A DNA stretch of 14,576 bases from Prasinococcaceae sp. CCMP 1430 (Eukaryota > Plantae > Prasinodermophyta), in contig RQSC01000004.1 of the NCBI GenBank assembly GCA_013416795.1, positions 72,871 through 87,446 of the forward strand, read 5' to 3'. A model generated the notes under the pieces. That model saw nothing but the letters and a program-made list of their open reading frames with translations. It did not search any database and was not told where the DNA came from. The translations under genes were made by a program, and so were the position numbers. This document shows positions 7,091-14,388 of the stretch, one piece after another. The stretch's first letter is position 1; every line of letters begins with the position of its first letter.

Positions 7091-7390
7091 GTTGCTCGCG
7101 CAGCCGCTGCCGCTCGAGGTCCGAGTACTCAAGGCACTCCTCTAGCTCGACCAGCTGCTGCACGCGCACAAGCTGGCCGTACGCGCGCTCGTACGACTCG
7201 CCAACAACCGCTGCGAGCTCGGTGGCGATGTAAGCGCGCGCAGAATCGACGTGTGCGCGCGCAGCCTCGAGACGGCCAGATCGCACCGCCAGCACAGCAC
7301 GGAAGAAGTCACCGTCGCTCTGCGAGCCCATGGCAGGCAGGCCAGTCGCCGAGGCCACACTACTGCCCACACGAAGCGGGCGGAGGCTTC
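7091..7390 (-). pseudogene. TOR: Isolated internal fragment of TOR kinase (FAT domain); no start, stop or flanking TOR sequence
   Basis: SDGDFFRAVLAVRSGRLEAARAHVDSARAYIATELAAVVGESYERAYGQLVRVQQLVELEECLEY matches TOR FAT (plant NGTFFRAVL...[34 protein letters not shown]). Ends at the single N at 7090. May be a misassembled piece of the intact gene rather than a pseudogene. Confidence 0.85.
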
Positions 7391-8519
7391 CCGCGTTGAC
7401 GCCGAGAGGCTGCGCCGCGAGCTTGCAGCGCGCCCCACCGTGAGGGCCGTGGAGGAGGCGCGGGAGACAATTCGCATGCTGAAGGGGCTGCTCGATGTGG
7501 AGGTGGAGGCCGCCTTCGACTCGAACGCGGCGAACAGCGCCGGCGGCGAGGGCGCCGGCGCTGACAGCAAGGCGATGGAGGCCGGACTGCGCGAGCGCGC
7601 GCGCAAGTTCCAGGGCGAGGCGCTCGCGCTGCGTCGCGCGCTCGACGACTCCAACGAGGAGCTCACGCGTGCGCACGAGGCGGCGGACGACGCGCGGCGG
7701 CAGGCCGGAGAGGCCGCCAAGCTCGCGGCGAAGCTGGAGGAGGACCTGCGCGTGGCCAACGGCGTCGGCAAGGGGGGCGCGGCCGGCGCGGACGGCGAAG
7801 GGGGTGCGGGCGCGCCGGGCGGCGAGCAGAACGGCGAGCATGGCAGCAGCGCAAGCATGCTCGACGTCGTCGTGGCGCAGCGCGAGCGTTTCAAGGCGAA
7901 GGCGGAGAAGGCCGAGGCCGACCTTGCGGAGCTCCAAGCCGCGCTCGAGAAGGAGAAGGGCCGCACCGCCAAGGCCAAGAAGGACAACGTCGCGCTGTAC
8001 GAGAAGGTGCGCTACCTGGAGTCCTACGGCACGCGCTCCGCGAGCATGGAGCGCGTCGGCGGCGGCGCGCCCGCGCTCGCAGGCGCGCGCAGGGGCCCGC
8101 TCGCGCAGTGCCTGCCGCAGCGCGCTGCCGACCTGGAGGCCGGCGCGGCTGCCGACACGCCGGAGGGGCGCGCGGCGGCAGACTACCGCGCGAAGATGGA
8201 CCCGTTCGCGCAGTTCACGGAGCGCGAGCGCGTCAACGCGGCCCGGCGCCTGCGGCTGCACGACCGCATCGCGCTCAGCAGCGGGCGCTTCCTGAGCACC
8301 CACGCCTTCGCGCGTGCCTTCGTGGTCTTCTACCTGCTCGCGCTGCACGTGTTCGTCGCCTTCGTGATGATGCACGAGGTGGGCGAGCACAGCGCGTACT
8401 ACGACACCACCGGCGCCGAGCTTCCATCGCAGCAGGCGGTGCTCATGCAGAACGCCAACGCCGCCAACGCCGTCGGCGACGGCGCGGGCGGCGCGAGCGC
8501 GGGCGTCTTGGGCGCCTGA
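7385..8519 (+). CDS. CASP: CASP / Coy1 golgin, C-terminal about 375 aa (5' part missing)
   Basis: SMLDVVVAQRERF, KKDNVALYEKVRYLESY, MDPFAQF, DRIALSSGRFL and TM helix FYLLALHVF (conserved intramembrane Tyr and His) match the CASP C-terminal domain; TGA 8517-8519. Left boundary approximate. Confidence 0.92.
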
Positions 8520-11150: not shown

Positions 11151-11321
11151 CTGCGGTGAGACCCGCCGTGCGCAGCGCGCGGCCAGCTCGAGTCAGCGTC
11201 GGGCGCGCGCGCGTTGGTGCGCGCGTTGGAGGCAGGAGAGCACCCGCGCGCCCGCGCGCCAGCATGCGCGTTGCACTCGCACGCGAACGCACGCGCGCGC
11301 CGGCGGTGGGAGCGTTCTCAC

Positions 11322-11805
11322 CTTCAGGAACTTGCCGTTCATGGTGATGACCACGCGGTCCTCGCCGCTCTTGCCTTGCACCTTCTTCACCGTGCAGTAG
11401 AAGTCGATGGCGCTCATGATGCCGTCGCCGAACTGCTCGCTGACGATGGCCTTGATGGCCTCGCCGTAGAGCGTGATCGCCTCGTACGTGCGGTAGACCT
11501 GCGGGTCCTGCAGGACGGCCGGGTCGAAGCCGCGCATGGGCGTCCGCCGCATCTCGGCGAGGTCCTCGTCGGCGAGGCCCGGCACGGCGCGCAGCAGCGC
11601 CGGCGCGAGCTCGTCCGGCAGCGGCGCTTGGTTGTAGAGCAGCTGCGCGGCGTAGCAGTTGGTCACGCCCAGCGCGGCGCCGATGTCGTCGAAGGTGAGG
11701 CCGGCGGACTCCTTCGCGTCCAGCAGCCTGCCCACGAGCGCCGCGCGCCGCTCCGACGCGCCGCCCCCGCCGCCGAGCGGCCGAGCCACCGGCAGCGGCG
11801 CGCCG
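11322..11805 (-). CDS. CYN: Cyanase (cyanate lyase, CynS family), main exon; 5' end in gap
   Basis: DPQVYRTYEA (catalytic Arg and Glu), EQFGDGIMSAIDF (catalytic Ser), DRVVITMNGKFL; donor AAG|GTGAGA at 11321. Confidence 0.97.
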
Positions 11806-12654
11806 NNNNNNNNNNNNNNNNNNNNNNNNNNNNNNNNNNNNNNNNNNNNNNNNNNNNNNNNNNNNNNNNNNNNNNNNNNNNNNNNNNNNNNNNNNNNNNN
11901 NNNNNNNNNNNNNNNNNNNNNNNNNNNNNNNNNNNNNNNNNNNNNNNNNNNNNNNNNNNNNNNNNNNNNNNNNNNNNNNNNNNNNNNNNNNNNNNNNNNN
12001 NNNNNNNNNNNNNNNNNNNNNNNNNNNNNNNNNNNNNNNNNNNNNNNNNNNNNNNNNNNNNNNNNNNNNNNNNNNNNNNNNNNNNNNNNNNNNNNNNNNN
12101 NNNNNNNNNNNNNNNNNNNNNNNNNNNNNNNNNNNNNNNNNNNNNNNNNNNNNNNNNNNNNNNNNNNNNNNNNNNNNNNNNNNNNNNNNNNNNNNNNNNN
12201 NNNNNNNNNNNNNNNNNNNNNNNNNNNNNNNNNNNNNNNNNNNNNNNNNNNNNNNNNNNNNNNNNNNNNNNNNNNNNNNNNNNNNNNNNNNNNNNNNNNN
12301 NNNNNNNNNNNNNNNNNNNNNNNNNNNNNNNNNNNNNNNNNNNNNNNNNNNNNNNNNNNNNNNNNNNNNNNNNNNNNNNNNNNNNNNNNNNNNNNNNNNN
12401 NNNNNNNNNNNNNNNNNNNNNNNNNNNNNNNNNNNNNNNNNNNNNNNNNNNNNNNNNNNNNNNNNNNNNNNNNNNNNNNNNNNNNNNNNNNNNNNNNNNN
12501 NNNNNNNNNNNNNNNNNNNNNNNNNNNNNNNNNNNNNNNNNNNNNNNNNNNNNNNNNNNNNNNNNNNNNNNNNNNNNNNNNNNNNNNNNNNNNNNNNNNN
12601 NNNNNNNNNNNNNNNNNNNNNNNNNNNNNNNNNNNNNNNNNNNNNNNNNNNNNN
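11806..12654. other. Assembly gap (849 N)
   Basis: Run of N covering the cyanase 5' end and the divergent promoter region. Confidence 1.
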
Positions 12655-12756: not shown

Positions 12757-12782
12757 CACACACATACACACACACAAACACC

Positions 12783-12839
<57 letters not shown>

Positions 12840-12853
12840 ACACGCACACGCAC
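12757..12853. repeat. (CA)n microsatellite just upstream of the TK-like ORF
   Basis: CA runs directly visible. Confidence 0.9.
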
Positions 12854-12866
12854 GCGCCGCTCGGGG

Positions 12867-13751
12867 ATGTCGACGAGCGCCAACCTGCCCGAGGTGGCGG
12901 GGGGCTCCATCGACCTGGTGGTGGGGCCGGCGCGCTCGGGCAAGCGCGCCGAGCTGTGGCGCCGCATGCTGCGCCACATGAACGCCAGGCGCCGCTGCGT
13001 GGTCCTCACGCACGACGCGAACCCCGACAGCGTCGAGTACAGCCTCGACCCGCGCCACGCCGACGACCCGCGCGTGTGGGACAGCGACGAGGAGATGGCC
13101 GACAACCCCACGCTCGTCACCGTGCGCACGCCGACGATGCCCGCGTCGACGCTCGCGGAGGCCGACCACCACGTGTGCAAGGGTTTCGACGTCGTCGGCA
13201 TCGACAAGGGGCACCTCTTCGACGACGTCGCCCTGTACTGCGAGAGGTGGGCGAACGTTGGCAAGGTGGTGATCGTCGCGGCGCTGGACGGCGACTACCA
13301 ACGCAAGCCATTCGACGGCGTGCTGCAGCTCCTGCCGCTCGCGGAGGGCGTGGTCAAGCTCAGCGCCGTGTGCGAGTGCTCGGCGACCGCCGCATTCTCC
13401 ATGCGCTTCGTAGCCGCGGACGGCGGCGTCAAGTACCGCGCCGTGTGCCGCCGGTGCCACCGCGACGCCGCCTTGGACGCCGAGAACGTGCCCCCGGGCC
13501 CGCCCGAGGAGAAGACCCCCACTCCCCGCTCTGCGCCGCCGCCCTCCGCCCGCGCGCTGCCCGCGACGCCCCACGCGCCGGCCACGCCGGCCATCGCCGC
13601 CGACCCGTGGCGCCCCACCTCCTCGCCGCCGGCGCGCACGCGGGACACGACGCCGCACGCGGTGCTCAGGCGCAGGGCGCTCGCGGAATCCTTCGAGCGC
13701 ATGCACATCAGCCCGCCCTCCGCCTCGACGCCGGTCCGACACATGCGCTGA
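12867..13751 (+). CDS. Thymidine kinase 1 (TK1/tdk) family protein, 294 aa, with degenerate active site and Pro/Thr-rich C-terminal tail
   Basis: GSIDLVVGP..SGK, VVGID, ANVGKVVIVAALDGDYQRKPF, LLPLAEGVVKLSAVC, KYRAVCRRC follow TK1 order; intact, intronless, GC3-rich ORF. Confidence 0.92.
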   Translation: MSTSANLPEVAGGSIDLVVGPARSGKRAELWRRMLRHMNARRRCVVLTHDANPDSVEYSLDPRHADDPRVWDSDEEMADNPTLVTVRTPTMPASTLAEADHHVCKGFDVVGIDKGHLFDDVALYCERWANVGKVVIVAALDGDYQRKPFDGVLQLLPLAEGVVKLSAVCECSATAAFSMRFVAADGGVKYRAVCRRCHRDAALDAENVPPGPPEEKTPTPRSAPPPSARALPATPHAPATPAIAADPWRPTSSPPARTRDTTPHAVLRRRALAESFERMHISPPSASTPVRHMR

Positions 13752-14060
13752 CTGGCTGGGGCGGGGGCGTCCGCGAAACGCCGCTGCTCTCGTCGGCCAG
13801 AGGACGCACACATGCGGCCACCATCTATCTATACTACAGTCTGCACCACCATCGATGGCACACCGTCGCGGACGGCGGGCGGGAGCGTCGTGCGCCAGAG
13901 ACTGCTGGCATAGTCAACCGAACTCCCTCCGTCGCCCGGCGCGCTCGCGCCCGCGGACGCTCCGAGTTGCTCGGCGGCAGCGGCTCGGACGGCAGCGGTC
14001 GCGCACGCTCGCGCCATTGTGACGACGACGTTTCCTTTTCGCCACTTTGCGTACGGCACA

Positions 14061-14388
14061 GTAGTCTAGAGTGCTAGTCTAGTGCCTACAGCGACGGCGC
14101 CGACGGCCACACCGCGCGCGCACGGCGGCGGCGGCGGCATTGGCAGACCCATCCTCCAGGCTCGGGGCCTAGAGCCTGGTAACCAGGCTCTAGGCTCAGC
14201 TGCAGGTCCCTTCATCTGCCCCCCTTTTTGCCCCGCGTGCCGCGCATCCGGTCTATCACAGCTCGCTAGACTAGTACTAGAGAGAGAGAGCTGTCGCGCC
14301 CGCTCGCCCGCACCATCCACGTGGCACGTGCACGCGCGCCAAATCCACATCCGCCAGCGAGCTCCAGTTTTACTGTAGACTAGACTAC
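14061..14388. mobile_element. Candidate non-autonomous DNA transposon (MITE-like), 328 bp
   Basis: Terminal inverted repeat GTAGTCTAG (14061-14069) / CTAGACTAC (14380-14388), flanked on both sides by ACA (14058-14060, 14389-14391); longer subterminal inverted match; non-coding, CTAG-rich. Confidence 0.5.

Follow-up and report, generated by a model that had tools for sequence, protein, structure and literature searches.

The marine alga Prasinococcaceae sp. CCMP 1430 carries a thymidine kinase gene of the TK1 family in which the residues for catalysis and thymidine binding have been replaced, and which, at a probability of roughly 0.6, represents a lineage-specific duplicate of the alga's canonical cytosolic-type TK1 that has lost catalysis and is now weakly constrained. 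The gene is a single 294-codon ORF on the forward strand of the window (i.e., the whole 14,576-nucleotide stretch of DNA analysed here), extending from an ATG at 12867 to a TGA at 13749-13751; an initial annotation of this DNA had ended the feature at 13480, but the ORF continues to 13751. Dead TK1 domains are already known, and what is new here is the young, unfused form. The features of the gene and its surroundings are collected in Table 1.

Table 1. Features of the dead TK1 gene and of its immediate surroundings (positions are those of the window).
Feature	Position	Strand	Basis
Whole ORF, dead TK1 paralogue (294 codons + stop)	12867-13751	+	ORF call; identical contig in DNA run X1
TK1 domain, residues 13-198	12903-13460	+	Pfam PF00265, 6.8e-33; AlphaFold2 and Foldseek
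Degenerate P-loop G20-PARSGKR-A28; Met, Phe, Ser/Thr and Thr changed to Ala, Arg, Arg and Ala; Lys kept	12924-12950	+	alignments
Internal ATG (M34), start of EukProt model P0010	12966-12968	+	first ATG after the possible RNA contig start at 12953
Rearranged, predicted disordered beta2-beta3 loop: 9-residue insertion with displaced THDA copy, D61-P-R63-H64 (13047-13058), acidic insertion of about 10 residues	13008-13124	+	alignments; pLDDT <50
1-bp deletion (frameshift) in environmental allele L005/L006	13160	+	two assemblers agree, probably one sample
I112-DKGHLF118 in place of IDEGQFF	13200-13220	+	alignments
First zinc Cys pair C169-E-C171; CxC, with one residue fewer than CxxC	13371-13379	+	alignments
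Lasso remnant, R180 to Y190; clamp Arg and Tyr kept	13404-13436	+	alignments
Second zinc Cys pair C194-RR-C197	13446-13457	+	alignments
Pro/Ala-rich C-terminal tail; predicted helix, residues 263-278 (13653-13700)	13461-13748	+	AlphaFold2; pN/pS about 1.2
(CA)n microsatellite	12757-12853	.	sequence; allele-variable; breaks metagenome contigs

The protein matches the Pfam TK profile (PF00265) over its full length (profile positions 1-176 of 176) with 114.4 bits against a cut-off of 20.6 and an E-value of 6.8e-33, and its best solved relative is human TK1 (2orv, E 2.2e-32), with the poxvirus TKs also scoring at about 1e-32. The AlphaFold2 model has a core (residues 11-50 and 90-210) with pLDDT values of 86-95, and Foldseek's top 46 PDB matches all represent TK1 from eukaryotes or poxviruses (target-normalised TM scores, 0.78-0.91). 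Together with the full-profile match, the superposition of this predicted model on solved TK1 structures agrees with the initial annotation, which had proposed a TK1-derived protein with an intact fold; the AALDG, RKPF and LPLAE..VKL motifs that it listed as remaining are likewise all kept in the alignments. Outside of the core, the model predicts disorder for residues 53-86 (pLDDT <50) and for most of the 96-residue tail, in which a helix (residues 263-278) is the exception. The canonical relatives carry a loosely similar C-terminal tail; a destruction box common to these tails was considered and dropped, as RxxL is found in the window protein only.

A search with HMMER, carried out exhaustively, provided 157 TK1 domains for alignment, including 134 canonical ones, and the conserved set was defined as the 45 columns that are at least 85% conserved in the latter. 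The window protein keeps 36 of these 45 columns and has changed nine, as compared with 45 of 45 kept in its canonical relative P0002. The changed columns comprise two of the P-loop (M22A and F23R), one of DxRY (Y64H), the THD His, three of the catalytic motif (E114K, Q116H and F117L), a Gly that disappeared with six deleted residues of the lasso, and an Asp whose column is ambiguous in the alignment. Beyond the nine, the Walker-A Ser/Thr has become Arg (R27; CGC at codon 12945) and the next residue, a Thr, has become Ala. The P-loop consequently reads GPARSGKRA where canonical TK1 has GPMFSGKST, departing from the Walker A pattern GxxxxGK[S/T]. Of the 152 aligned domains with a residue at this position, 148 have Ser or Thr, and Arg occurs, among all 157 domains, in the window's own cluster only. 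In the catalytic motif, IDKGHL stands in place of IDEGQF: the catalytic Glu, present in 100% of the 134 canonical domains, has been replaced by Lys (AAG at codon 13206), while Gln has become His and the thymine-stacking Phe has become Leu. The lasso loop is six residues shorter than in canonical TK1. These P-loop and catalytic replacements, along with a shortened thymidine-binding lasso and the zinc pairs CEC and CRRC, had been read from the letters in the initial annotation, and each was borne out.

The four zinc cysteines (C169, C171, C194 and C197) and the lasso clamps R180 and Y190 are all present, and K26, D113, R63 and F149 have been kept as well. In TK1, Glu serves as the catalytic base, and thymidine is held by main-chain atoms of the lasso and by stacking side chains, with an Arg and a Tyr holding the lasso itself (PMC4433323). 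It would therefore seem that the protein has lost its catalytic base, its Mg-binding Walker-A residue, its thymine-stacking Phe and the lasso strand whose main chain binds the base, and that it has retained the alpha/beta core along with the zinc site and the clamps of the lasso. Given these replacements, and what is established about the Walker-A Ser/Thr and about Glu as the base, it is predicted, with high probability, to be unable to phosphorylate thymidine.

Compared with canonical TK1 as represented by human TK1 (PDB 1XBT, 1W4R and 2ORV; PF00265), to which it is 36-37% identical, the window protein is alike in its predicted two-domain fold, four zinc cysteines, Arg/Tyr lasso clamps and AALDG/RKPF/LPLAE core. 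It is unlike in its Walker-A Arg, its Lys for Glu, its Leu for the stacking Phe, a lasso six residues short, a CxC zinc pair, two loop insertions and the 96-residue tail.

The two insertions lie on either side of the DxRY remnant, one of nine residues and one, acidic, of about ten. The motif had been described as replaced by the acidic insertion, but it survives as D61-P-R63-H64, aligned to human D58-T-R60-Y61. Codon 64 (13056-13058), the Tyr position of the motif, encodes His, Arg or Tyr depending on the allele, and it is the frameshifted allele that has the canonical Tyr. The 9-residue insertion (13008-13034) is located right after strand beta2 and opens with CTC ACG CAC GAC GCG (L-THDA), a near-copy of the stretch that, in the closest canonical type (type A, described below), lies further downstream and codes for the canonical V-THDA motif; the resemblance points to a local duplication or rearrangement. 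An intron was ruled out as the origin of the loop insertion, since a possible RNA contig and the EukProt gene model are both colinear with the genome and plausible splice sites are lacking.

All of the words sampled from the sequence were found in 16 public runs from at least 11 studies, one DNA contig (run X1) is identical to the window over 12855-14120, and contigs from four Tara Oceans samples represent alleles that are 96-97% identical and keep every substitution. This agreement upholds the initial argument against sequencing error. The accompanying statement that the gene has no stops or frameshifts holds for the reference and for three alleles, but not for allele L005/L006, which carries a 1-bp deletion. 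The absence of stops, although real, says little at 72% GC: in simulations, the probability of encountering no stop under neutral evolution was 0.07-0.5, and other reading frames in the region also hold ORFs of more than 370 aa, such that 'no stops' was rejected as a sign of selection. Codon-position GC in the ORF is 0.70/0.55/0.97, in line with the GC3 bias noted earlier as normal, and the GC content of intergenic DNA is 0.67-0.70 as against the GC3 of 0.97.

Maximum-likelihood analysis groups the window protein and its alleles with two canonical types, A (P0002/P0013, 265 aa) and B (P0037), in one clade with an SH-aLRT support of 99, and the TKs of green algae, among them Micromonas pusilla and Coccomyxa viridis, lie close to this clade in the tree. 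The window stem measures 1.23 substitutions per site versus 0.25-0.28 for A and B, i.e., it is about five times longer, and 45 amino-acid changes are unique to the window protein as compared to eight for A and 15 for B. Synonymous divergence is smallest between window and A (dS 0.38, relative to 0.71 for window-B and 0.91 for A-B). The window protein and the A type are 47-50% identical, with a nucleotide identity of 79% over the core. In type B, the called genes (L017:3304-4023 and L018:1133-1852) begin inside the P-loop (…IPFIRSGKSS), and this suggests that an intron or an uncalled first exon may split the P-loop codons; the type A and window genes are uninterrupted at that position.

All five assemblies with the dead type (from four samples) also hold the A type. 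When the window was compared with the A-type contigs for synteny, nothing but the TK core was shared, and the flanks differ: a NUDIX gene lies downstream of the A type and a cyanate lyase gene upstream of the window TK. Since the A type is present in every assembly with the dead type, and at a non-syntenic locus, the two probably represent two loci in one genome. The proposal of a TK1 paralogue in the initial annotation thus appears likely, the nearest relatives being canonical TK1 lineages of which one accompanies the dead type throughout. The dead form itself is confined to one species-level cluster; the exhaustive search found no orthologue outside a single 90%-identity cluster, and nothing between 96% and about 50% identity, which leaves no set of orthologues across which a dN/dS below 1, proposed earlier as a check, could be sought.

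Two lines of evidence lend partial support to constraint on the dead TK in the past, as substitutions have avoided conserved structural columns and indels have all been in frame. When the test is restricted to sites where A and B agree, the columns changed on the window branch amount to 15% of the highly conserved, 32% of the intermediate and 56% of the variable ones (Fisher p = 0.002), and the conserved columns that did change all lie within the P-loop, DxRY, THD, catalytic or lasso motifs. At least five indels have occurred on the branch, and the length of each is a multiple of three, an outcome with a chance of about 0.004 if lengths were random. A GC3 of 0.97 beside a GC2 of 0.55, and the positions of polymorphisms within the domain (see below), count on the same side. 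On the preferred reading, the ORF remained able to encode a TK1-fold protein for most of the time over which it diverged. Parsimony mapping of changes in the domain gave a nonsynonymous to synonymous count of 48:10 for the window branch against 19:13 (A) and 38:35 (B) for the canonical lineages (p = 3e-4), and omega on the window branch is therefore about 1 or more. Among the four alleles, 18 nonsynonymous and eight synonymous sites segregate, yielding an overall pN/pS of 0.77 (domain, 0.58; tail, 1.18), which is indistinguishable from 1 but above 0.2 (p = 8e-4). Within the domain, these polymorphisms cluster at residues 64-71 of the disordered loop and otherwise affect residues 145, 147 and, in the lasso remnant, 183 and 185; the core has none. 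In the same three samples, 20 segregating sites were counted in the dead gene and three, a small number, in the canonical A type; this sample-matched comparison replaces a pN/pS control that was biased by fetching loci through an identical protein. Where the initial annotation spoke of a 'retained' dead enzyme, the replacement of catalytic and thymidine-binding residues is thus upheld, but the retention is called into question by the branch omega, the allelic pN/pS and the frameshift allele. Constraint at present is weak, and the gene may be dispensable.

The principal rival to a duplicate that passed through a period of constraint is a functionless one in decay, with its ORF still open because the duplication is recent and 72% GC rarely yields stops. 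Such decay is possible, although at odds with part of the record: it would account for the branch omega, the allelic pN/pS of 0.77, the frameshift allele, a diversity six times that of the canonical copy, the restriction to a single species cluster and the neutral probability of 0.07-0.5 for an ORF without stops. It would not readily account for in-frame indels throughout, for the avoidance of conserved structural columns, for the clustering of the nine changed conserved columns in the P-loop, DxRY, THD, catalytic and lasso motifs, for a GC3 that rose to 0.97 rather than falling to the intergenic level, or for the existence of a gene model and of possible RNA contigs. It is unlikely, in turn, that the dead TK is the species' own TK1 orthologue, with the A type contributed by a co-occurring sister species and the TK activity of the alga itself lost. 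Neither EukProt nor NCBI contributes a member to the A-type cluster, whereas EukProt lists the dead copy, and only that, for the source alga, and the A type was found in at least 20 samples as opposed to four for the dead type. Against this stand the co-occurrence in five of five assemblies, the absence of synteny on either side and a base composition that is the same overall (GC 0.705 for A-type contigs vs. 0.709 for the dead-type locus), and a microsatellite and a repeat, which limit dead-type contigs to about 1.3 kb, account for how seldom the dead type is recovered.

A kinase that is still active, with altered chemistry or a new substrate, is the least credible reading. In its favour, residues K26, D113, R63, R180, Y190 and F149 are kept and the predicted fold is intact, but a Lys stands at the catalytic base, an Arg at the Walker-A Ser/Thr, the lasso strand has been deleted, and the Glu is essential for catalysis (PMC4433323). 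The A type of the same ocean populations, by comparison, is a canonical gene that evolves about five times more slowly, holds about one sixth of the diversity and occupies a separate locus beside NUDIX.

Whether a role at the protein level has survived in this duplicate is evenly balanced. If it has, then by analogy with known systems the most likely role would be that of a non-catalytic partner subunit, i.e., a dead TK1 that assembles with active TK1 and would be to it, in trans, what the inactive domain is to the active one in tandem TKs. In the tandem TK of Trypanosoma brucei, as summarised in later articles, an inactive N-terminal TK1 domain pairs as a pseudodimer with an active domain, stabilises the enzyme and raises its affinity for substrate (Ranjbarian et al. 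2012, via PMC9190010, PMC10208901 and PMC5098729). Such tandem enzymes offer a precedent for the putative part in mixed oligomers that the initial annotation had suggested. The likeness, on those summaries, lies in a TK1-fold unit without catalytic residues beside an active TK1 unit; the difference is that the T. brucei units are fused in one polypeptide, whereas the window gene is separate and, according to the tree, of independent origin. Tandem TKs have at least two TK1 domains in one polypeptide, whereas the window protein has one domain according to Pfam. The part of the window that has been sequenced, which excludes an 849-N gap, holds no second TK domain, and the A type is found on different contigs. 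A related concept is offered by the AdoMetDC prozyme of trypanosomatids, a dead paralogue that pairs with the active enzyme and is conserved and essential (PMC6221367), although it belongs to a different enzyme family, and the window gene is weakly constrained and its pairing putative.

The initial annotation knew of no described example in algae, and this stands for the unfused form only, dead TK1 domains being known in tandem TKs. Glu-less TK1 domains are found elsewhere in tandem proteins (P0027, P0028, P0030, P0046, P0063 and P0101) and in single-domain ones (P0069 and P0064), and P0032 is also among the double, triple or Glu-less TK1 proteins listed. Double and triple TK1 proteins with one Glu-less domain come from metagenomes and from the free-living protist Barthelona sp. 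PCE (P0046; KAL0234445.1). Glu-less domains often show the Gln to His change as well, and P0069 reads GIDQGHLF and has an acidic loop and a degenerate lasso. Both the tandem and the single-domain Glu-less forms are nonetheless placed apart from the window protein in the tree, and none has Arg at the Walker-A Ser/Thr position; a grouping with P0069 and P0063 on the strength of their shared GHLF is contradicted by the tree, in which the catalytic Glu must have been lost independently at least six times.

Given tandem TKs with an inactive domain and these repeated Glu losses, a free-standing dead subunit joining the TK1 tetramer is a reasonable model, albeit a tentative one that analogy makes conceivable rather than probable. 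The more specific version, in which a free subunit in mixed tetramers with canonical TK1 would regulate the enzyme or raise its affinity, as an unfused counterpart of a tandem TK soon after duplication, is a little more doubtful still. In such a subunit, the Lys and Arg now present at the active site might keep a nucleotide bound without turning it over. Inactive TK1 domains have so far been known only within tandem enzymes, mostly of parasites, in which the active half is tuned by the dead one. A version encoded by a gene of its own, in an alga that is marine and free-living, would mean, if true, that the same arrangement can begin from plain duplication. The identifiable canonical partner and the frameshift among natural alleles make this a young case in which to ask whether dead duplicates gain a role or decay. 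If the gene has no role, it is an ordinary decaying duplicate. It also serves as a warning that, where the GC content of a genome is very high, an open reading frame is poor evidence of function.

Evidence for expression of the dead TK is weak. Among the public runs searched, no run recorded as RNA contains the gene, and the contigs of one run that was guessed to be RNA lie within the ORF only (12953-13599). The EukProt model P0010 (261 aa, 100% identical to the window) starts at M34, and a product from that start, without the P-loop altogether, is possible.

The surroundings of the gene have limited its assembly on both sides. The (CA)n microsatellite ends 14 bp before the TK start codon, and all metagenome contigs of the gene stop within it. 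An 849-N gap (11806-12654) is located 212 bp upstream of the start codon, and the true promoter region is therefore unread. A cyanate lyase gene on the reverse strand (11193-11804; Pfam Cyanate_lyase, 8.5e-30) is arranged head-to-head with the TK gene and enters the gap. Downstream, a short repeat (14091-14142) limits assembly; summed contig depth in DNA run X1 rises there from 42 to 348, and several contigs start or stop within it. Elsewhere in the window, a forward-strand ORF (7146-8516) with a GC3 of 0.91 encodes a CASP C-terminal domain (Pfam PF08172, 9e-40).
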